Assembly (NCBI GenBank): GCA_977016875.1 | Contig: CDRNST010000180.1 | Location: 2,170,001-2,234,000, forward strand | Direction: 5' to 3' | DNA from: Pavona decussata | Lineage: Eukaryota | Length of the DNA stretch: 64,000 nt | Translations under genes and position numbers: made by a program | Notes under the pieces: generated by a model | What the model was told of the DNA's origin: nothing | Databases searched by the model: none | What the model saw: the letters and a program-made list of their open reading frames with translations, nothing else | Part shown: in pieces, positions 6,001 to 63,283 of the stretch | Position numbering within the stretch: the stretch's first letter is position 1 | Layout of the letters: each line of letters starts with the position of its first letter

Positions 6001-9000
6001 GGAATCACTCAAACGTTCTTCGGAAATCTTCGGATATACTCGACACTGTTCGACTAATTAAGGGACACCGTTGATTCGATACAAGAGCGCAAAAACACAT
6101 GAGAAGAAAAGGTTATACTACTTCCGTTTGATTTTGCAACGACAAGACATTTCTCAATAGCATTTTCCTCGAGTTTAGTATATATAGAAGGTCAGCATGG
6201 GGGTGCTGGATTCTCAGCTATCATAACCATTTCTCGGTTATGAGGTGACTGTTTCAGCTATTTCTCGAAGCTATCAATTAATTAAGCCGGACTTCACAAG
6301 ATTCGGTTCCGACGGACAAGCGGTACCACACTTAATAAAAGAAAAAAAAATTAAACTACTCCATTTAAAATGTGAGTTAATGTCATTTTTAGACCACGAT
6401 TGCGGTGAACATAAAACGTGACGTTTGTCACCGAATTTTAATGCTTGTTCATTAGTCAGAATCTCTTCCTCCCAAGGCCAATACGGGGGATATGTACGTA
6501 TTTTTAACCGTTACGCAGTTTCGAAACCTAACCTTGACTTTTCATGAATTCTCTTTACCATTTGGGGACGACCTGTACCGTTTGCAACATCTTACATGGT
6601 TGGTCGAGAGGACAAAAGAATGAACAACAGAACAATGCTTCCAGCCCTAAAAACAATGCAGCTGCAGGTTATCAGGGTCCAGTGAAAATAGAGCTTTTGA
6701 AGGGTACAGGTCCGCTGTACCATTTGGATCCTGTAGGTCGATTGCAGGATTAAGCCAATTCAGAAATAATACCAATTCCTTGCAGTTCATGATTTTCGTT
6801 ACACTTTTTTTACTTGATTGGGATACTTTTTACAACTTAAAATCAGCTTTCGGATTGCTTTTGTATAAACTTAATTATAACATCTGACAGGTTGAAAAGT
6901 CCTAATTACACCTTTCAATTTTTAGACGAAGAAACAATATTTTGTGGGTTACTTTGGTTGGTGAGTTGGACCGGCAACTGATGGGTTTAATAGTGTTTTT
7001 TTCTTAGTTGTACTGAAAGTAAAGTAATTTTGATAATTTTGATATACGAACAACCAAGATGAGGTCGTTTTTTACATATCACGATTCGCATGCTGCTTTT
7101 TGTTTCCTTTATTAAACAAAAAGTTGAAGATCCTGTCGCGAAATAGATTTCTCTGATATTTTCTCGGGAATTCTCGAGTGGCATTTATAATTTTTTATCC
7201 TGAGTGATCATCTCTAGATCTCTAGGACGTCTCTGTTTTCGTCACGTTTTAGTTCAACGTCTTAACTTTCAAAACTTTCTGAAAATAAAACTGAAAATAA
7301 AAAGCTAATTATTGATAAACATTAAGCACTTTGGAAATTCCTGCTCGGAGCTGCTTGCCAGCTCAATAGTTTTTTGAAGGATTCAGTTGAAGTTAGACTA
7401 GAGCTTCATTTTTCTATCTGAGCGTGAAAACAGGCAAACAGATGGTTATAGCTCATAGGTAAAGAAAGACGGATTATGTGTGCTGACAAATATGCTAGCC
7501 TCACTAAGTCTTGAAAAGGCACCGAGTATCATCTTAGGTTGCGGTGGACGAGTCATTCGTACTGTAGCATCCTTACTTCACACAAAATAGACGACATATG
7601 ACAAAGATGGCGCTACCTTGTCCCAAACAGCATGACAGCATCTCTTGTACAAAGTCGACCACCGCCGCTTTTCATCTGAATATCACTTATCACATCTTAT
7701 ACACTAAAAGCTTAGCTGACTACCTTTACATGCGGCATACTAAATTGAAGAGCAAAAATAAGTATGGCCGAGAGTTTCCATTATAATGCTCACACAAACA
7801 CAATTAATTTTATTCTGAATAACACTGAGTGGAGAACAACTGAATTAACTTTGCACAAAGCTTAGAACTGTTACAGTAAGCGAGAGTAAAAAATAGCAAC
7901 TTTTTCTTCAAGACTGTTCTGAACTAGCTATCAAAAGTAGGTGACTCGTACTTGAGGCCGAACTCGCGCAGAGTCGTAGTTTCGGTTTAAACCCGCAGTT
8001 TCTGGCTCTTTAAATTTACCTTTACGTTTTCGGTTAATAGATCTATATATTTCCATCGTAATAATAAATTTTCCTAATTTTTCATGCAGGCAAGCAGCGT
8101 TTCATTCTGACCTTAAAGAAAGACCGAAGCAACCGGCGAGCCGTTCCCTTGAAAGAAAATTGCTAATTCTCTCTCTAATGTTCTTGGTTCTTTTTGAGGG
8201 GATGTGAACGTGAGTTTTTGTGAAAATTCTTGTTAGGCCATCTGAATTTTCACTTACCTTGTTCTTGTTACTCAGCTGGTGCTAAGAAAAGAATATATTT
8301 CTTTTGAGTTAGAATCTGCAGTGAGAAGCAGGAGCAGTTGTTCCGGCGTAAAGTTGAGTTCTTATGTTAAAAATACAACCTCTGTTTTTTAAGGGGCCTC
8401 TAGTGATTTAAGGGGAAGTGTTGAAGGCGTTTTCAAGCAATTTAACAAAAACTGCGTGGAACATAACACAGGTATTTTTAGTTTACAAGCGTAATTACAC
8501 TCATTCCTCATTTTCAATTCCCAGAAAATGATCCTTTAAATCTCAGTAAGTAGGAATCAGACTTTTTTTCAACCCTTTAATCTTCAAACCGCCTCCATAT
8601 GTCATATATTTAATAGCACCTTAACAGTGATCAATTAGAGTGATTTTTCAGCCTCCCTTTACCAGCCCATGGTACCCATTCGGTTCGATTCCGGCGCCTA
8701 CGTTATAATTTTTCAATAGGGGCTGGTTGTTTCGCTACCCTCTGAAAGTCATTTGTTAAAAGGGGAAGCTTATGGCATTGAGGGGGTTTCTAACTAAAGC
8801 ATTTTCAAAATACTGACTTGGTTAGTTATATGATTCAAACGAAAGTTTACTAACGCACAATACTTCCTTCTACGACTGCTATCGAACGCTGATTCAACTA
8901 CCTAAGGGTACATGATCACAAAAAAAAAGGTCTAAAAAACATCCCTTTTCTCAAAAATGGATCAATTTGAGATAAATGCTCGTAGTTAACTTCCGGGTCG

Positions 9001-51956: not shown

Positions 51957-52234
51957 CTATCTTGTACATCCGCGACGCATTCCTCTACTCGTTGGTATAA
52001 CTGGCTTGTTGTCTTTCTTCCATTTCATTCTTCTATTTTGAAACCAGATTTTGATTTGCCGTTCGGAGAGTTGTAACATGGAGGACATCTCGGTGCGTCT
52101 CGCCTTGGTTAGGTATCTTGTGAAATGAAATTCTTTTTCTAGTTCCAGAATTTGATTTCGTGTGTAAGCAACTCGTCTTCGATGCTTGAACGGTTGCTTG
52201 TAATGCCACGGGACATCTTTGTCATCTTCACCGT
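51957..52234 (-). CDS. Anthox1a: Anthox1a gene, exon 2 (W-motif plus homeodomain)
   Basis: Acceptor ATTTAG|AC, phase 1. Translates [84 protein letters not shown] and FTRYLTK..RTEM are Anthox1/1a-type; linkage to Anthox7/8 favours 1a. Confidence 0.88.
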
Positions 52235-52579
52235 CTAAATATTTAAACAAATTTTGAATTTCATTAGTTAAGGTTCCCGCGAAAGTATTAGTTAGAAACA
52301 AAGTGGATTTGAACTCAACTCTGATAGCACTTCAAAGGTTTAGTAATGCAATCAATGTTAAGCAATAAAAAACACTGTTTTTCTTAAATATTTCATATGA
52401 ATGATTGATTCTTTTCAATATTCCATTTGACCTGTGGGTAATCGAACTGATTGCACACTCAAACATTGTTTAAAATTTGTTCCTGTTGTAACTTCAATCG
52501 GCGCTTCGATGCTATACTTCCACATGTTTCGATTTGCGCGTACTGTTTTGTTCTACTCAAATGTAACTCCAAATCGTAC

Positions 52580-52943
52580 CTGTTTTATCTTCTGATTCAC
52601 TGGCATCTTTCCCGGATTGGCAGGGCTTTTCGTTAGGCTCACTACATGTAGTTTCTTCAAGTGTTTCTGCAGAGCTGTCGCTCGGCGACTCTGGTGGAGT
52701 TCGTGAAGCTGTTGATAAAGGACTTGCATTGCTTTCAGAATTCGTCACAAGGCAAGGAATGCTTTCTCCTAAATGAGGCGGACTTCTTGAAGTTACTGGT
52801 GGCCTGTGGATCTCAGTGTTGCGGCTCAATGCAGGGAAAAACTGAGAAGAATAGTACGCTGGGACCCCATAACCGTATACAAGAGGAGGTGCGTTAAAAT
52901 AAGCCGGCTGGCGAATTCTACCAGCTTGATAGAAGCAGTCCAT
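52580..52943 (-). CDS. Anthox1a: Anthox1a (HoxE-type, central/posterior-like Hox) gene, exon 1
   Basis: ATG at 52943 opens a Pro/Ser/Tyr-rich N-terminus. Donor ACAG|GTACGA (intron starts 52579) is phase 1, in frame with exon 2. Confidence 0.82.
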
Positions 52944-56100: not shown

Positions 56101-59100
56101 GTACAACTGGATTATGTCATCCAATGACTTTTTATTTGTGTCAGAAAAACTGACGCCCTCTGCACTATAATATTTTATCGACGGCCAAAAATAAACTTTC
56201 ATTCCTTTTAACATCTCTGTCGTCAAATTAACTTTAAATTAACAAATTGTAACTAAATAAAGACAACATATTTTTTAAGTGCCAAGGGGACTTGAATGGT
56301 TAACCAACATCCTGTTTAGACAAATCAAAACCGAGCTTAAAAAATAGCACTGCACGAATGTCCGCCTTTATTCATACAGTAAACACAGCGAATAGCACCG
56401 TGCAAAAAGAGTATGCACCCTGAGTATAGAGCAGATCTATTGGCTAACATTTGCAATAGGAGGACTCAGTGTTCCCCCATGAAAAGTTGCATGTATGTAA
56501 ATCTGCAGGTAGGGTCTCTCAACATATGAGCTATATCGCCGGTATATTGTTGGTTCCGGAAAGGCTATTAATATCTGTGCAGTAGGGGTTAGTCGGAAAC
56601 GGGGTATGAAAAGATTCTATCAGGATACGGTTAATATAAACTAACTTTTCTAGCCCTTTTTTTTAGGTTAAGGATGGGTCTGTTAGCATCTCTTCCACCG
56701 CCCTTCGGCGAGTTTCGTCATCGCATTTCGACCAACTCCACCCTCCCTATGTTTACAAATTAGCATGATATATAAACTGAAATAACTGAACTCTTGACAT
56801 TTAGTCTGCAAAAGAAGTTTTTAAAGAGCTTCAGGATCTGGTATGTCAGGCATTCTTTTGTTAAGGGTGTTCGTTTCTAAAGATACTGCGGTGCTGCGTC
56901 CGTGGGGAGAAGAAACAAATGTTTGGTTTATCAACAGAGTTGATAACTAAAGGTAAATTGGCGGCCACCGTAAAGAGATTCCGAGTGCTGACACTTCAAG
57001 CGTTGGCTCTTCGTCAGAGCGAAGTAAACTCTACAAGTTATTTGAATTTTACTACACGACGGCTAAGTGAGTGAAAAATCCAATTTCCGTTTACAGAGCT
57101 TAACATATCCTTATCAACTTAATTCTTGACCAATCTATCTTACTCTCTTGTTCTCTTACAAAGATACGGAAGCACGGTTCGTCTAACTGTTCCGTTTTGT
57201 GGGTTTGCCGCAAACAAAAAGGTGACATTTCCACTGTAACGGACGGATTGTAAATACATTCTGTTGAAACAAGGCAGGAAGGAAGTACAAGACAAAGAAA
57301 TCCTGACGGGTATCTTTCGTCTTTATAATAATCTAACATCAGCGGCTTCTTACGGTTCAACTCGGTGGATATCTGTTCGCCGGGAAAGCCTTAATCGCTT
57401 CAGAAATTCGGATTTAATTGTTAGGAAATTCTTAAAGGGAAGTATCATGGGGTTTTTGATATCTTTTGTTAAAAATACTGAAACAAGACCTTCAACCAGC
57501 TGCCAAATAATTCTAGACTGACGAGAGGAAAGAAATCAACTCAATTCTTGAAAGAAACAACTCGTGATCTGTTCTATCGCATTTTGGAAACAAAAATGCG
57601 AGAACTTGAAAAACATTAGCCTAACATTTTTCAAGTTTCAATCCATACCGACCGTACTCTCTGGTTGGTCAGAGGCACTAAACGACAGTTTTATTGCACT
57701 GGGGTGATAATTTATAACAAAACAAGACAGCTATTTTTTTGTTTCTGTTGTCAGACAAACATTTTTGGGTTTTGAAACGTCATCAAATTTTCGTGATACT
57801 TCACCTTTAATCGCCTTAGAAATTCGGATTTAGTTAAGTTGTGAAGAAATTCTTAAGTTTTCTTTTGCAAGATGTCAGATCAAAATTTCGTAACACTGAA
57901 GAACTAATTCCTTTCGTTTTCGAAGAAAATAAACATTCATTTGATTGAAGAGACAAATATGTAGTAAAGATACGGGAAAAGGTCAGCTAGCACTTTCATA
58001 AAGCCAACAACAAACAGCCGTAAATTCAGGGGAAAAGGGCAGGAAACGATCTGGAAGCACGCGTACGAGACATGTTTTAAAGGCTTAGATGTTATCGTCG
58101 GATGTCCCTCTAACATGCATGGTGCTTCCGATTATGATTTGGTTTCCGTCCTGAGGAAATTAGCGCTATGAAGGTAAACCTCGGCAAAATCTGAAGAAAT
58201 CATTCAAGAAAATTTCAGCGCCGTTGCTAGTGAACCTTAATTTTTTCTGTTGTTGCTCCAGCCGAGTATCGTTGTAATAGCGGCCATGCCTGAGATACAA
58301 GAAAGTTTGCACTTTTATCACGAGTCCTTTCCACCAACCAAACAACTTGTGAAACGAGAAGAAATTTAATTTAAACTTTTATTTGAAAACTTAACATCGT
58401 ATCTTGGCTTACGCCCGTTTCCAGCTTATTTCCAGCCCACGCGTGGCGCAGGTTGCTCGTAGCTTCTAGCGCTTTAGTACCAGTTGTATGTTTTCCCGCG
58501 CTTGAAACCGGTTACATGTTTTTCTGCACTTGGCACTTGTTCGATCTCGCTCTTGGTACGGCGGTTGCATGATTGCAAACTTATTTTTGTAATCCACATC
58601 TAAGGAGATATATTGGGAATATTAATTCTACAGGTTAACATTGTTAAAAGGAAGAAATGTGTCGATTTCAGTAAGGCAAAAATCATTAGAGTCCAAATGA
58701 TTTCGATTTCTTTCACTTTAATATCGTAAATAAATATGAAAAAGTCAAAATAAACTTCTCAATATCGTGAAGTATTTTAATTTTGTTAGGTTTTATATCG
58801 TTCCCTCCAAATTGTTAATAATTCGTTGATGATTAAGAATAACAAGTGGCTTTTAGACTGAAAAAAGACGTCAGTAAATTAGGAAGAAAAGAATAGAATA
58901 ATAGACAAAACATTGGGGACAATTTCCGTAAGCCTGCCTCCCACATTCATCTAAAACACCATGCATTGCCTTGACAACAGTCAAGAGAGTCTCGAACCCA
59001 CGAAACTGACAAGCATATTGAAGGCCAAGTTCAATGTAGGCGAAGTCAAACGTTTATTTTTGTTCAGTCTGATTAATCAGTAAAATAAGATTCAAATCCC

Positions 59101-59175
59101 CAGGCTAACAGACTAATTCAGTCATGAAAGATAGCATATATCGTGTATATTTTGTTCGCTGATTTCGTTGAAGTG

Positions 59176-59523
59176 AGAACAGTTTTCAAAAGACTGTCAT
59201 TTAGAAACCATGGCTGTGAATAATACTAAAAGCACCAAGCAAAGCTCAAAACAAGCTGTCATTAGCTGAATGGTGAGGGGCGAAGTGCGAAGCGGGAAAA
59301 AATCTGCAACCGGTGACAATGCTCATTGGTTGCCAAAACGCGCGCCACTTTCTTAACCAATGAGAAAAAAACTACTCGCGTGCGTTTTCCCGCGCTTGGC
59401 GCCGGTTACATGTATTTGCTTCGAGTTGATACTGATTGGTTCATTGCGTTGTTTACGTCTGTTCTGATTGATTGGAGTAATTACTATGGTTTTGATTTTA
59501 CGACACTCGTTTGAAAGCTGCTC
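59176..59523. mobile_element. MITE-like element
   Basis: Ends AGAACAGTTTTCAAA...TTTGAAAGCTGCTC. The internal TTTTCCCGCGCTTG...CCGGTTACATG motif recurs at ~58490. Confidence 0.6.
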
Positions 59524-60734
59524 CTATGAGTGCTGTAAAATTTTTAGCGCCTCTGATCTTGAATGAATTTTTTCTCACATTGTCTCTTATTACAGTCCAC
59601 TGAATTTAAGCCCCGCCAAATGTTTTTAGTTGCTTTAGAATAAGGCTAAATAAAAAACTGTCATAATATGAACATTTTTTTATTGTAAATATAGCAGACC
59701 CATCACTACATCAATGAATAAACCTACCAAGACGTTCGCTTTCCTACGTCTTTTTTCTATCAGCTAAATTTCTAAATCTCTTTGTTTTTAGTGATGTGTA
59801 CCTTGTCGGTTGGGACATGAGATCACTGACGTATTGCGTGTAGAGAAACCCTGGTTATAATTTTTTGCAAAGAAAGAGAGCGATTTTACGTTTACGCACT
59901 GTGATTACGGGAATATGCTAAACAATATTTGAAACGCTTCTTGGTTAATAGACCTCGCGTTACAATTATAACTGAGCCGTAAAACTTCTACGCTGAACTG
60001 TGATACTACTTTGTCACATATCGTCCTGTTTTTCAGCGGTAATCAATATGCCCGATTTTTTCACACAGCCTGAATCAGTGACTAATACCAGTTTCAGTTT
60101 ATAAAACGTTCTTGAATACAACACGCACTTTCTAGTTCAATACGAATGTTTTTAAATATTGTTTGGTATTCATTGTTTAGAATTCAAAAGCGACGTTCAT
60201 TGACTCAGCTGCCAACTCGAGCTCATATTTGTTGATATAATCAGAGATATATATAATTCCAGGCCCTCGGTGCCGCTTCTTATTATCTACCTTTACGAAC
60301 ACACTTGGTCCGTTGGCTGTATCAGTTTTGAATATCTTACTTCCGTGGTAGAATATTCCGCTAATCTCGGAAAATTTTAAATCAGCGCGCGCACATTCTC
60401 AGTGGGAACTCTTTAGGTTACCAAGGCTTTTAGTCACAAGACTCAAGGTGCATACGAAAATCGGCCGATGCACGTGCTCTGTCTTCCAAATATGGAAACG
60501 CAATGTGAACATGACCAATGAGCAATTCCCGGATGCACGTGAGTCGTGTTCAATACTGTACCTTGGCGGGAAAAAGTCCAGAGTACGGTACCAAAACAAA
60601 CCTAGATCCTGTACAACCGGTCTAGCCTTGGACTTCCAAGGAATACAAAATAAAGAGACACTAAAATAATATTATCATACCACGGAGCATTTTGTATCAG
60701 TGGTAAGAATTTTGTTACGCCTTAAAGCTCCAAG

Positions 60735-61430
60735 ATGGATCTTTGCGTGAAAATTTTGAACGACACCGAATCTGTGAACTCAGCGAAACGTCTTTTGTAC
60801 GATGTCTATATCCACGAGATGGGTTGGGACTTTCGTGACGATAACCCAACTGGTTTTCGCATCGATAAAGACAAACGAAACGAGCCGATTCTTTGTGATG
60901 TTTTTGATGATGATGCCGTCTGGTTCGGCGCCTACAAAGAAGACAAAATAATTGGAGTAACTCGCGCAGTACAACGAAGTAACGCCCTTGGGAAGCTCGA
61001 CCTGGAGCTGTATCCGGCGAGTGGACTACCTTCCATGAAAAGAATTTTACAAGGAAGTAATGGTCATAAATTGGTAGAAGTGCAGCGAGGTGCAGTTTTG
61101 AAGGACTACAGAAAAACACAGCCAAGCATTATCCAGTTACTCCTTTTATACGTGTTTGGTTACGCGCAAGAGAAAGAACTCAGTGTTGTGTGTCCCACCG
61201 TATTCCCCGTATTAGAGACTTTATTTAGCCGCGCTGGTATGCAGTTGGTGGAAAAAAATTTCACCTACGGTGAAGGAGGCGAGGAGTGGCCCACTTTTAT
61301 CTTCTACTGTTCCTCAGCTGAGTTGGCGCAAGTTGCGAGGAGATTAAAAATAGCGGGAGGAAAACGGAAATCAAGCTTCTTACAAGAAAGAGGACAGCAA
61401 GCTAAACGACGCAAATTTCTTGTCGTCTAA
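60735..61430 (+). CDS. Intronless GNAT-fold acyltransferase, LuxI / N-acyl amino acid synthase (FeeM)-like, 231 aa
   Basis: Longest ORF in the window, with AAGATGG start context. Ordered motifs AKRLLYDVYIHEMGW, DVFDDDAVWFGAY, IIGVTR, LDLELY, LVEVQRGAVLKDYRK and LFSRAGM parallel the LuxI/NAS pattern. AATAAA at ~61751. Confidence 0.75.
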   Translation: MDLCVKILNDTESVNSAKRLLYDVYIHEMGWDFRDDNPTGFRIDKDKRNEPILCDVFDDDAVWFGAYKEDKIIGVTRAVQRSNALGKLDLELYPASGLPSMKRILQGSNGHKLVEVQRGAVLKDYRKTQPSIIQLLLLYVFGYAQEKELSVVCPTVFPVLETLFSRAGMQLVEKNFTYGEGGEEWPTFIFYCSSAELAQVARRLKIAGGKRKSSFLQERGQQAKRRKFLVV

Positions 61431-62039
61431 CTCCAGGATTTTCAAAGGGAAAGGGTCGGGCAATTTTCAGCAGCGGGTTAACTTATAAATTTCTGATATT
61501 TTTAAAAGTTATATGTCGGTAAAAGAAATATGGAAAAGATTTATTTGATATCAGTTGTGCATGATATTATTTGATATTGTATATACCGGTACAGCGGTAA
61601 AAGAAAATATGGAAAATATTTCATTGATATTCAAGTTGTGGGTAGCAACTTCATTCAAGAGATCGACAGAAAAATTTGCATCCCTCATCAAATTCAAAAC
61701 CCACATATTATCTTTAGTAAAGTACACTAAAGAGAAATAACCCGTAATTGAATAAAGGAGCTAAATTAAAACATGTTTGACCATTTGTTGTATTGTTTTA
61801 CCCGAAACATCATTTAACTATTTATTTTCCATTGTACTTACGATTGTTAAAAATGTCAATTTTCATGTTTTCTTTGTTTAAAGTTATTAACTATAACTGA
61901 AGACAAGATTATTGTTTTTCAATTATTGCACCGGAGCTTGCACAACCGAAAGCTCAAAACGCTTTGTACTGTATCCAGACCGTGAACCGTCCCGGCACAT
62001 AAAAATATTTTCGTTTTCCTATTTGTAATTATTTTCTTT

Positions 62040-62238
62040 NNNNNNNNNNNNNNNNNNNNNNNNNNNNNNNNNNNNNNNNNNNNNNNNNNNNNNNNNNNNN
62101 NNNNNNNNNNNNNNNNNNNNNNNNNNNNNNNNNNNNNNNNNNNNNNNNNNNNNNNNNNNNNNNNNNNNNNNNNNNNNNNNNNNNNNNNNNNNNNNNNNNN
62201 NNNNNNNNNNNNNNNNNNNNNNNNNNNNNNNNNNNNNN
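62040..62238. other. Assembly gap (~200 N)
   Basis: Run of N. Confidence 0.99.
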
Positions 62239-63024: not shown

Positions 63025-63283
63025 ATGGAAAAACATTCTCCCAAACTCTCCTTTTCAATAAGCCGGCTTCTTGGAACAACAGACGAGACAGATCCCGTGG
63101 AAATGAAGGATAATTCCTCGAATATCGGAGAGAGGAGCTTACAGTGTGGCCAGGCCGAATCTGCACAACAGAACAAAGTCGAACAACTCACGGTGAATTC
63201 GCAGAGCAAGGGACACGAAGAGCGATGTATTTATCCTTGGATGACTCAGTTTAACAGGCGTAGCAAGGGAAAGAAAAAGAGAA
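63025..63283 (+). CDS. Exon 1 of a third ANTP-class homeobox gene; homeobox exon not found in this window
   Basis: AACATGG start context, eh1-like FSISRLL (aa 10-16), hexapeptide IYPWM, then a probable phase-1 donor AA|GTAAGG at 63284. Same architecture as the Anthox7/8 exon 1. Confidence 0.75.

Follow-up and report, generated by a model that had tools for sequence, protein, structure and literature searches.

We analysed a window of 64,000 nt from the stony coral Pavona decussata (contig CDRNST010000180.1), in which a single-exon open reading frame (ORF) of 231 amino acids runs from ATG to TAA at positions 60735..61430 on the plus strand. The ORF list and direct reading of the sequence confirm the original prediction that this ORF is intact and intronless and lies in a Hox cluster. 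We annotate it as the coding sequence of a GNAT N-acyltransferase on the basis of the ORF list, the sequence, the Pfam model PF13444, its single copy, its orthologues and dN/dS. The acyltransferase gene is flanked by an Anthox1a-type gene on the minus strand and an Anthox6a-type gene on the plus strand, provisional names taken from the order that a Montipora preprint gives for the cluster (10.1101/2024.09.29.615694). The upstream Anthox1a-type gene has its homeobox at 52014..52181 (minus strand; PF00046, 79.5 bits) and its first exon at 52575..52943 (minus strand; 61% identity to the exon-1 peptide of Porites in tblastn), and its start codon lies 7.8 kb from the acyltransferase ATG. Downstream, the first exon of the Anthox6a-type gene, which includes a YPWM motif, was located at 63025..63283 (plus strand) from the ORF list and from exon-1 homologues in corals. 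Its homeobox lies outside the window at contig position 2241951 (plus strand), ~8 kb beyond the window end, at 7936–8130 of the contig stretch that follows (L010). A further homeobox is present in the window at 31659–31829 (minus strand).

The ORF had been described as contiguous with Anthox1a. This holds, as the interval from the Anthox1a-type gene up to the ORF contains no N run; on the other side, an assembly gap of 199 N (62040..62238), 610 nt downstream of the ORF, intervenes before the downstream homeobox gene. The flank also contains a host repeat, as had been predicted, but the element given as a MITE at 59176 fits the description of a ~200-bp interspersed repeat at about 59325..59523 better. 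It lies ~1.2 kb upstream of the ORF, and a search of it for terminal inverted repeats turned up none that were convincing. The genome search returned 2,869 candidate places for it, the 40 scored places showed 77–82% identity and were spread over many contigs, and RNA-contig depth over the repeat was very high.

The genome search found one copy of the acyltransferase gene in P. decussata, with a 100% match. Orthologues in the stony corals Montipora foliosa, Porites lutea and Oculina patagonica are 73–84% identical and sit on chromosomes of 33–53 Mb. The Oculina assembly has a frame change near codon 33. Comparison of the window sequence with the Porites orthologue gave dN 0.148 and dS 1.27 (dN/dS 0.116), the one usable ratio, as dS was saturated in every deeper pair. 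The ORF has a GC content of 44.7% and its flank one of 37.9%, values that, like the untranslated regions (UTRs), are usual for the host. All hexacoral copies examined lack introns, and a stop-free frame of 231 codons is presumably rare by chance at the local base composition, according to a rough estimate. The synteny check suggested with the original prediction gave the same gene order in four coral species: in Porites, Oculina and a further species (L006), as in P. decussata, the acyltransferase is Hox-adjacent, with Anthox1a-type homeobox orthologues (88–93% identical) 7–8.5 kb upstream and Anthox6a-type exon-1 homologues 1.1–5.4 kb downstream. The gene is tightly linked upstream of the Anthox6a-type gene, and this linkage is conserved in stony corals; the control by Hox enhancers suggested originally would be a hypothetical addition to it.

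Transcript evidence covers the whole ORF. A transcript-like contig at 60689..61740 (plus strand; run X1, record 8) extends over the ORF, with ~46 nt of 5′ UTR before it and at least 310 nt of 3′ UTR behind it. This record (1,132 nt, depth 19.5, 22 differences) contains the ORF and short UTRs only, and the depth of the run is zero over 59628–60539. Runs X1 and X2 were taken as RNA by guess; for X1, an RNA-type contig is indicated by the size of the run, as 164 million letters of DNA would be too few for assembling a single-copy locus in a genome of 602 Mb. Pieces from run X2, which is presumed RNA, cover 60852–61740, and the X1 and X2 contigs diverge after 61740. In X6, a metatranscriptome obtained by RNA-seq, a contig ~95% identical over 59973–61546 starts 760 nt upstream of the ATG. 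A putative TATA-like A/T-rich stretch at 60662..60675 (plus strand), read from the sequence 14–27 nt upstream of the RNA contig start, is a candidate core promoter. A polyadenylation signal, AATAAA, lies at 61751..61756 (plus strand), 321 nt past the stop codon, and comparably placed poly(A) signals (+303 to +335) are present in Porites and Oculina. The acyltransferase gene is thus expressed.

Because the ORF is conserved, evolves at a low dN/dS and is covered by RNA contigs, it is a gene, and one that is functional, constrained and part of the coral host genome. Contamination, mis-assembly or a dead ORF could draw on the downstream gap and on the Oculina frame change, but these accounts are ruled out, with almost no probability left to them, by the same neighbours in independent chromosome-scale assemblies of other corals, the host repeat in the flank, the dN/dS of 0.12 and the RNA contigs over the ORF. 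The original prediction had likewise argued against contamination, and single copy number and the Hox genes on the same contig add to that case.

The family to which the protein belongs was examined by sequence and by structure. PF13444 (Acetyltransf_5) is the sole curated model that the window protein passes, just above the gathering cut-off (24.5 against 22.4 bits, residues 22–129), and it is also assigned, in precomputed annotations, to most orthologues. With the FeeM model PF21926, the window protein scored 18.7 bits, below the cut-off of 27, and three relatives scored above it: P0023 (42 bits) and the bacterial-type P0045 (35.1 bits) and P0034 (35.8 bits). The best NCBIfam matches were OlsB models, with 29.4 bits against an equivalog cut-off of 320 (NF052555) and 21.4 against 350 (NF052554); these scores are well under the cut-offs, and orthology to OlsB was rejected. 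Searches of PDB sequences with the single sequence and with a coral profile returned nothing significant (FeeM chain, E = 0.31). With a wider family profile, generic GNATs matched best (SACOL1063, E = 1.3e-5; also PaiA and Naa50), and the LasI and BjaI chains reached E = 0.085 and 0.51, respectively. As generic GNATs match best, sequence alone ties the window protein to neither FeeM nor LuxI. The sub-threshold FeeM score and the lead of generic GNATs over FeeM and LasI in these searches run counter to a FeeM reading.

The AlphaFold model of the window protein (pLDDT 76.8, pTM 0.79) has the GNAT alpha/beta fold, and VIA-align gave Z ≥ 8 for 849 of the 999 chains compared, nearly all of the listed ones being GNATs. 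The Foldseek search, another of the checks suggested earlier, ranked FeeM first (2G0B, E = 6.5e-9, TM by target 0.71), and in both programs the top group comprised FeeM, RpaI, BjaI and LasI. VIA-align Z-scores were 16.4 over 180 residues for RpaI, 16.2 over 173 for FeeM and 14.8 over 179 for LasI. Generic GNATs align over ~140 residues only, although the Z-scores of the two groups differ by ~1 or less, and NAA60 and NatC also stand high in the ranking of both programs. In the ESM Atlas, every match by features (0.94–0.96) and by shape (TM 0.63–0.72) was a bacterial FeeM/Acetyltransf_5 cluster; one feature neighbour cluster is named AHL-synthase family and one structural neighbour putative L-ornithine N(alpha)-acyltransferase. 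Pfam, Foldseek/VIA-align and the Atlas thus support assignment of the product to the FeeM/OlsB/LuxI-like branch of GNAT N-acyltransferases, and the proposal of a FeeM/LuxI-like GNAT of mainly bacterial type stands.

The four motifs quoted in the original prediction are present in the order given: R19-L-L-Y-D-V-Y..E28-M-G-W31, C54-D-V-F-D-D59, G74-V-T-R77 and V114-E-V-Q-R-G-A-V..Y125-R126. Across 16 orthologues, the majority of the key motif residues do not vary (W31, C54, D55, F57, D58, G74, V75, R77, E115–V121 and R126). Trp31, Asp55, Asp58, Arg77, Glu115 and Arg118 are conserved and follow the order of the LuxI motifs, a correspondence that rests on motif order without a significant alignment, and two motif residues are replaced. 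The LuxI-family positions themselves (Trp, two Asp, Arg, Glu and Arg) follow the earlier motif list.

These residues, the presence of RpaI, BjaI, LasI, TofI, MesI and EsaI among the best structural matches and the Atlas cluster named for AHL synthases would suit a true LuxI-type AHL synthase that combines SAM with an acyl donor to give quorum-sensing signals or their mimics. However, the AHL synthase model Autoind_synth (PF00765) gave no match to the window protein even at E ≤ 10, LasI reached only E = 0.085 with the family profile, two LuxI motif residues are substituted and FeeM-type clusters dominate every Atlas search. The conserved residues also fail to separate the two enzyme types, as N-acyl amino acid synthases have the same ones as AHL synthases. 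A LuxI-type identity is therefore highly improbable, and AHL synthesis by the coral acyltransferase is unlikely; the LuxI membership suggested earlier fails with PF00765, which leaves AHL mimicry speculative.

The CoA P-loop Q/R-x-x-G-x-G/A is absent from its expected place in 16 of 16 coral-type sequences, which have Y-R-K-T-Q-P-S there; some members of the wider family retain a partial R-G-x-G P-loop. Loss of the P-loop marks carrier-protein-dependent GNATs (PMC11685415). The window protein has a conserved 14-residue loop, G86-K-L-D-x-E-L-Y93. The C terminus forms a basic tail resembling a bipartite nuclear localization signal (NLS) (K210-R-K ... K224-R-R-K; 61362..61415, plus strand), directly followed by a conserved hydrophobic end, F-L-V-V (61416–61427, plus strand). 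In the 16 coral-type orthologues, K224, F228 and V231 are invariant, and K205, K210, R211 and L229 are conserved at ≥90%. The pLDDT of 38–43 over the tail predicts disorder. The tail is absent from the homologue of the anemone Actinia (210 amino acids) and from its nearest relative P0023 (213 amino acids), which marks it as a later addition.

The family extends well beyond corals. Homologues were found in Actinia tenebrosa, Rhopilema esculentum and Hydractinia symbiolongicarpus, so that Actiniaria, Scyphozoa and Hydrozoa are represented besides stony corals; all members looked up are annotated as uncharacterised proteins only. The cnidarian sequences form one clade (SH-aLRT 96) whose order follows the species tree, and the tree in which this clade is held together was the best found (lnL +3.6, p-AU 0.61). 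P0017, P0020–22, P0023, P0028 and L012 are called coral-, hexacoral- or scyphozoan-like only from where they fall in the tree, from conserved neighbours and from cluster mates that have names; P0023 and P0028, which come from short marine-metagenome contigs, group with Actinia. Exon-by-exon comparison of the medusozoan genes by tblastn revealed an identical phase-1 spliceosomal intron in Hydractinia and in a scyphozoan-like contig.

These results bear on the original proposal that a bacterial LuxI/NAS gene was acquired horizontally by the coral or by the stony-coral lineage. The lack of introns in all hexacoral copies examined is in keeping with such a transfer, as are the bacterial nature of the nearest characterised relatives and of nearly all Atlas clusters. 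The main text of a paper on horizontal gene transfer in corals (PMC4878875) names no acetyl- or acyltransferase among its candidates, and a case may thus have been overlooked there. Against it, anemone, scyphozoan and hydrozoan homologues share one clade with corals in species-tree order, medusozoans share an intron, the unrooted tree places no bacterial sequence with support inside the cnidarian clade, and GC content and UTRs are those of the host. A coral-only transfer is thus largely refuted and retains very little probability, and a recent bacterial transfer into corals does not hold. The single clade with its species-tree order and the medusozoan intron place any bacterial transfer before the cnidarian radiation, and vertical inheritance since before the anthozoan–medusozoan split is the best explanation of the family. 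A vertically inherited eukaryotic GNAT family, the outcome named at the outset as the one that would overturn the proposal, is nearly what we found, at least within Cnidaria; behind it, a very old bacterial origin is still conceivable. For surveys of horizontal transfer, the case carries a caution: an intronless, bacterial-looking coral gene proved to occur phylum-wide, with spliced versions in other classes.

Deeper in the tree, which is unrooted and has a weak backbone, sequences of bacterial type and from foraminifera lie all around the cnidarian clade. The bacterial relatives that could be named, drawn only from cluster look-ups and Atlas taxa, include Burkholderiales and Legionellales proteins and GNAT–PAS–histidine kinase–receiver fusions. 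Foraminiferal sequences (Bolivina and Nonionella) occupy a neighbouring clade; their transcriptomes may carry bacterial contamination. Together with the medusozoan spliceosomal intron and an unrooted tree that would fit either bacteria or foraminifera as the sister group, they could indicate an ancient eukaryotic gene that passed vertically down to cnidarians while most other lineages lost it, so that no bacterial gene entered the cnidarian stem. Yet among the ~30 relatives with source names, the eukaryotes are cnidarians and the two possibly contaminated foraminiferal transcriptomes only, and the majority of relatives, which are spread over many phyla and include bacterial-only domain fusions, either are bacterial or sit on dense contigs of prokaryote-like character. 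We regard this alternative, which would leave the enzyme reading unchanged, as doubtful. As nearly all other relatives are bacterial, the ultimate origin of the family is probably a very old transfer from bacteria.

The best explanation of the data as a whole, to which we assign a probability of roughly 60%, is a single-copy host GNAT of the FeeM/OlsB/LuxI-like branch that is inherited vertically in Cnidaria and would act as an N-acyl amide lipid synthase. Its most likely function would be the transfer of a fatty acyl group to an amine to yield N-acyl amide lipids; PF13444 enzymes use acyl-ACP to form the amide bond in aminolipids and in N-acyl amino acids (PMC11631085). In the proposed mechanism, the enzyme would bind a fatty acyl thioester, with the missing CoA P-loop suggesting an acyl-carrier protein as donor or a non-canonical mode of CoA binding. 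The invariant Glu115 could serve as the base, and Asp55, Arg77, Tyr93 and Arg118 could shape the active site. The acyl group would then be attached to an amino acid, or to a related amine, at its amino group, and the coral-type-specific basic and hydrophobic C-terminal tail may direct the enzyme to the nucleus or a membrane. The NLS-like tail by itself would better suit a nuclear protein-modifying enzyme than a lipid synthase.

An unlikely alternative is a conventional GNAT, dependent on acyl- or acetyl-CoA, whose substrate would be a nuclear protein or a small amine such as a polyamine and which would make no fatty-acyl lipids. The conserved bipartite-NLS-like tail points in this direction, as do the sequence matches of the family profiles to SACOL1063, PaiA and Naa50, the high structural ranks of NAA60 and NatC, the partial R-G-x-G P-loop in some wider family members and the use of CoA donors by the top structural matches RpaI and BjaI. 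However, the P-loop glycines are lost in the coral clade, LuxI/FeeM-type folds align over 173–180 residues compared with ~140 for generic GNATs, all Atlas neighbours are FeeM/Acetyltransf_5 clusters, and the tail, missing in the anemone homologue and P0023, is a later addition.

In stony corals, the gene has been kept between Anthox1a and the oppositely oriented Anthox6a-type gene, 1–5 kb upstream of the latter, where it would most simply be a bystander within a conserved regulatory block. It is a clear case of a non-homeobox gene that the compact Hox cluster of stony corals has retained, and it can serve to mark the regulatory constraints on that cluster.

N-acyl amides have known signalling roles, and little is understood of how animals make them. 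Membrane aminolipids, biosurfactants and signals are the products of FeeM/OlsB/LuxI-like N-acyltransferases, which are considered to be bacterial. With a clade of such enzymes that is conserved, expressed and under constraint in corals, anemones, jellyfish and hydroids, animals would have a direct, thioester-driven synthesis of N-acyl amides. We tentatively suggest, as a speculation that goes well beyond the main reading, that cnidarians use an ancient FeeM-like synthase to make thioester-driven N-acyl amide lipids that could serve in host–microbe or symbiont exchange, and that in stony corals the gene was captured in an Anthox6a-type regulatory domain and gained a nuclear or membrane tail. 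If so, animals would have a way to make signals of the N-acyl amino acid type without PM20D1 or FAAH, one that pre-dates the anthozoan–medusozoan split, and cnidarian lipids could share a chemical language with bacterial N-acyl amides and AHLs. In the literature searched, we found no description of a thioester-driven GNAT-type N-acyl amino acid synthase in animals and no earlier report of a cnidarian FeeM-like family, which is open to simple biochemical tests.

Among known systems, FeeM (PF21926, 2G0B) is similar to the window protein in its extended GNAT fold (Z 16.2 over 173 residues), and the degenerate CoA P-loop of the window protein recalls GNATs that depend on carrier proteins. Scores above the FeeM cut-off were reached by P0023 and by several relatives of bacterial type, and the nearest Atlas clusters are all of the FeeM-domain type. 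However, the window protein is only 16–18% identical to FeeM, is encoded by an animal without a neighbouring acyl carrier protein gene, and has the conserved 14-residue loop and, in corals, the basic C-terminal tail. OlsB-type enzymes share PF13444 with it, provide its best NCBIfam matches and have the chemistry expected here (acyl-ACP reacts with an amino acid to form an amide), but the score of 29 bits compares with a cut-off of 320, and no OlsA-type O-acyltransferase is evident near the animal-genome locus. LuxI-type enzymes (RpaI 6WN0, BjaI 5W8A, LasI 1RO5, TofI and EsaI) resemble the window protein with Z 14–16.4 over ~180 residues and in the motif order of Trp31, Asp55, Asp58, Arg77, Glu115 and Arg118; they differ in that it has no PF00765 match and, as noted originally, carries other residues in place of the motif Glu and the first motif Arg. 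PM20D1 is a peptidase M20 enzyme and FAAH an amidase run in reverse. Their folds and mechanisms are unrelated to those of the cnidarian enzyme, yet the product class predicted here, bioactive N-acyl amino acids, is the same as theirs (PMC7145423).

The acyltransferase open reading frame (60735–61430, + strand) runs from ATG to TAA over 231 codons, as read from the ORF list and the sequence, and the positions and strands of the neighbouring genes place it between two divergently oriented homeobox genes. Upstream, on the − strand, homeoboxes were mapped at 31659–31829 and 52014–52181, the latter belonging to an Anthox1a-type gene with exon 1 at 52943–52575 and a start codon 7.8 kb from the acyltransferase. 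Downstream, on the + strand, exon 1 of another homeobox gene, containing a YPWM motif, starts at 63025, and its homeobox lies at contig position 2241951, about 8 kb past the window end. The distance from the acyltransferase to this exon is about 1.6 kb as assembled and includes a 199-N gap (62040–62238). Homeoboxes and exons on both sides confirm the original prediction that the ORF lies between Anthox1a and a third homeobox gene; the ORF was then described as contiguous with Anthox1a, and this gap lies on its other side, towards the downstream homeobox gene. In stony corals the cluster order is Anthox6a paralogues (in the opposite direction), Anthox1a, Anthox8, Anthox6 and Evx, and robust corals as well as complex ones keep this order (Montipora preprint, 10.1101/2024.09.29.615694). 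Naming the upstream gene Anthox1a and the downstream gene Anthox6a-type fits that order.

Several results establish the ORF as a genuine gene of the host. The 602-Mb assembly has a single copy of it, and orthologues 73–84% identical to it are found in several stony corals; those of Montipora foliosa, Porites lutea and Oculina patagonica are annotated as "uncharacterized proteins" on chromosomes of 33–53 Mb. In Porites, Oculina and the species encoding the relative P0017, an orthologue of the 52014 homeobox gene (88–93% identical) lies 7–8.5 kb upstream of the acyltransferase on the opposite strand, and the downstream homeobox gene has its first exon 1.1–5.4 kb past the acyltransferase stop codon. 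Single copy number, host repeats in the flanks and the orthologues and synteny in other corals argue, as originally proposed, against simple contamination. Comparison with Porites, the pair usable for dN/dS (deeper pairs are saturated at synonymous sites), gave dN 0.148 and dS 1.27, a ratio of 0.116. The Hox-cluster position is a feature of the stony-coral lineage; no homeobox was found within 10 kb of the homologues in Actinia, its relative P0173, the species encoding P0022, Hydractinia or the scyphozoan-like locus L012. The conserved spot, 1–5 kb upstream of the Anthox6a-type gene and co-oriented with it, is most simply explained by a bystander locked in a conserved regulatory block. In Oculina (L005:9928–10621, chromosome CM126641.1), the orthologue match falls in two reading frames that join near codon 33, so that either the assembly contains an indel or that individual has a true frameshift; the annotated protein (P0015) is N-terminally truncated, and other sequences from its group in the tree, such as P0012, are intact.

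Part of the window is present in 19 public sequencing runs, 4 of them on record as RNA, and runs were mapped over 57500–62030. Run X1 carries the same organism label and comprises 164 million letters, its type being only guessed. It yielded a 1,132-nt contig of depth 19.5 that spans 60689–61740, beginning 46 nt before the ATG and ending just short of the AATAAA at 61751; depth is zero over 59628–60539. We take this contig as mRNA because 164 million letters of DNA reads would be too few for a locus present once in a 602-Mb genome to assemble. A coral metatranscriptome (X6) contributed a contig about 95% identical over 59973–61546, which is probably from another species and may represent a longer 5′ untranslated region (UTR) or DNA carry-over. 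No splice joint within the ORF was found in the runs mapped over this interval. An A/T-rich stretch at 60662–60675 (+), together with a favourable context around the start codon (A at −3, G at +4), would fit a compact intronless transcription unit. The contigs of X1 and of a further run, X2, both depart from the window at 61740, 11 nt before the AATAAA, and continue for 72–80 differing letters; an indel or allelic difference in the 3′ UTR could account for this, as could a splice that went unrecognised. The upstream element first described as a MITE proved to be an interspersed repeat of about 200 bp (~59325–59523, >2,800 candidate copies) in which clear inverted termini were not found. Short interspersed repeats here and at 57500–57800 have thousands of genomic copies; RNA-run contigs reach very high summed depth over both, and many end or join inside them.

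All four motifs originally reported in the protein are there, in the order claimed, and most key motif residues are invariant in 16 orthologues (W31, C54, D55, F57, D58, G74, V75, R77, E115-V-Q-R-G-A-V121 and R126). D55, R77 and Y93 do not vary anywhere in the family, with W31, W63, E115 and F176 close to invariant. In Pfam, the protein matched Acetyltransf_5 (PF13444) at 24.5 bits, just above the cut-off of 22.4, scored 18.7 bits against the FeeM family (PF21926, cut-off 27) and had no match to Autoind_synth; the top NCBIfam models were those of OlsB, yet far below cut-off. P0023, the closest relative beyond the coral-type orthologues, exceeded the FeeM cut-off at 42 bits, as did the bacterial-type relatives P0045 and P0034. 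An AlphaFold model from the orthologue alignment (pLDDT 76.8, pTM 0.79) retrieved FeeM (2G0B) first in Foldseek (E = 6.5e-9), followed by BjaI, NAA60, LasI, EsaI and TofI. VIA-align gave Z scores of 16.4 for RpaI (180 residues), 16.2 for FeeM (173), 15.2 for BjaI and 14.8 for LasI (179); small generic GNATs reached about 15 but with just ~140 residues aligned, so the extra length matches the extended LuxI/FeeM-type fold. The ESM Atlas returned bacterial clusters only, both by language-model features (0.94–0.96) and by shape (TM 0.63–0.72), with names covering FeeM-domain, Acetyltransf_5, ornithine N-acyltransferase and AHL-synthase families. Because the family profile, by sequence alone, ranks generic GNATs (SACOL1063, E = 1.3e-5) ahead of LasI (0.085) and FeeM, the placement on the FeeM/LuxI-like branch rests jointly on Pfam, fold and Atlas. 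The initial LuxI/N-acyl amino acid synthase-like assignment therefore holds for the branch and fails for a match to the LuxI model itself.

Searching 1.84 billion representatives exhaustively with a profile recovered 337 relatives at E ≤ 0.001, and look-ups among the nearest of these gave about 30 a source name; every named member is annotated "uncharacterized protein". They include Actinia tenebrosa XP_031572648.1 (P0024), Hydractinia symbiolongicarpus XP_057311551.1 (P0118), a Rhopilema esculentum protein within the P0044 group, two foraminiferal transcriptome sequences (Bolivina and Nonionella) and proteins of Burkholderiales and Legionellales MAGs, with further relatives on dense, prokaryote-like contigs. 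Trees of 153 and 59 rows unite the cnidarian and cnidarian-like sequences, 23 in all, as a single set (SH-aLRT 96), in which the stony-coral and anemone types are joined by the scyphozoan type and then by Hydractinia; no clear sister group to the set emerged. A trio of long-branched, prokaryote-like sequences breaks into the set in the careful tree, with negligible support (39/8), and constraining the cnidarians together raised the likelihood by 3.6 units and was not rejected by the AU test (p = 0.61). Exon-by-exon comparison of the spliced medusozoan proteins placed an intron with GT–AG ends at an identical position and phase in the genes of Hydractinia (L013:10001–11822; intron ~1.1 kb) and L012 (6519–10585; intron ~3.4 kb): phase 1, at the codon matching coral Gly40, directly after a conserved Asn-Pro-Thr/Ser. 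All hexacoral copies are continuous at this site, reflecting either loss or retroposition in Hexacorallia or gain in Medusozoa. These sequence comparisons indicate a family present in the cnidarian ancestor and vertically inherited. The homologues in Actinia, Rhopilema and Hydractinia and the single cnidarian set contradict the proposed horizontal acquisition by a coral, and the supposed arrival of a bacterial gene in the Hox cluster of a coral reduces to a cnidarian family of long standing. Judged by where its relatives occur, a bacterial origin of the family is plausible and would be very old.

A second coral-like group (P0022 at L004:10001–10696, and P0020 at L007–L009) is 45–47% identical, with the same length and the same K-F-L-V/I-V end, and had no homeobox within 10 kb; it could represent a sister order of stony corals or an old paralogue. 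Actinia tenebrosa carries, about 750 nt upstream of its intact gene (L011:9101–9279), a short degenerate copy of the N-terminal part (residues 6–40 and 71–95) that looks like a decayed tandem duplicate. In long bacterial fusion proteins the acyltransferase domain is combined either with cNMP-binding domains or with modules of the PAS, histidine kinase and receiver kinds; P0029, P0032, P0035, P0074, P0115 and P0116 comprise Burkholderiales-type PAS/HisKA/HATPase/receiver fusions and, in other bacteria, cNMP-binding or class V aminotransferase fusions. These are sensor-coupled FeeM-like enzymes and appear to have been little studied.

Together, the data establish that the protein is expressed, under constraint and enzyme-like, that its GNAT fold is of the extended kind and that acidic and basic residues are conserved in its core. 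Where the GNAT CoA P-loop (Q/R-x-x-G-x-G/A) is expected, the coral proteins have Y-R-K-T-Q-P-S; GNATs that depend on a carrier protein, FeeM among them, are described as typically lacking the P-loop (PMC11685415). We suggest that the donor would be a fatty acyl thioester, on acyl carrier protein or on CoA bound non-canonically, that Glu115 would activate the amine and that the product would be an N-acyl amino acid or related N-acyl amide. The acceptor may be bound by the family-specific loop G86-K-L-D-x-E-L-Y93, a candidate for that role that is invariant in corals, holds the family-wide Tyr93 and has low confidence in the model. A serious rival to N-acyl amide synthesis is a nuclear GNAT that modifies proteins or polyamines, retained mainly for the conserved coral-type C-terminal tail: K-R-K, an 11-residue spacer, K-R-R-K and a terminal F-L-V-V, predicted to be disordered, which could act either as a nuclear signal of the bipartite type or, being polybasic and hydrophobic, as a membrane anchor. 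AHL synthesis is unlikely because the protein failed the LuxI model test.

We found no paper that connects cnidarians with PF13444 or with N-acyl amino acid synthases, and the main text of a coral horizontal-transfer survey (PMC4878875) mentions no acyltransferase; with all named members uncharacterized, we judge the protein, as far as these sources extend, to be a new animal member. It adds a cnidarian representative to the FeeM/OlsB-type N-acyltransferases of Acetyltransf_5, and an animal-encoded FeeM-like synthase is both unstudied and readily testable. Within cnidarians, coral proteins carry the C-terminal basic tail, whereas the hydrozoan P0118 (residues 1–35) and scyphozoan P0200 (residues 1–60) have N-terminal extensions that coral proteins lack; the Hydractinia extension has a basic and hydrophobic character and may be a peptide that targets an organelle. 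Compared with known systems, the protein falls, in the strict sense, outside the LuxI and OlsB families and, by score, outside FeeM; it belongs to Pfam Acetyltransf_5 and would work like the FeeM/OlsB-type N-acyltransferases.
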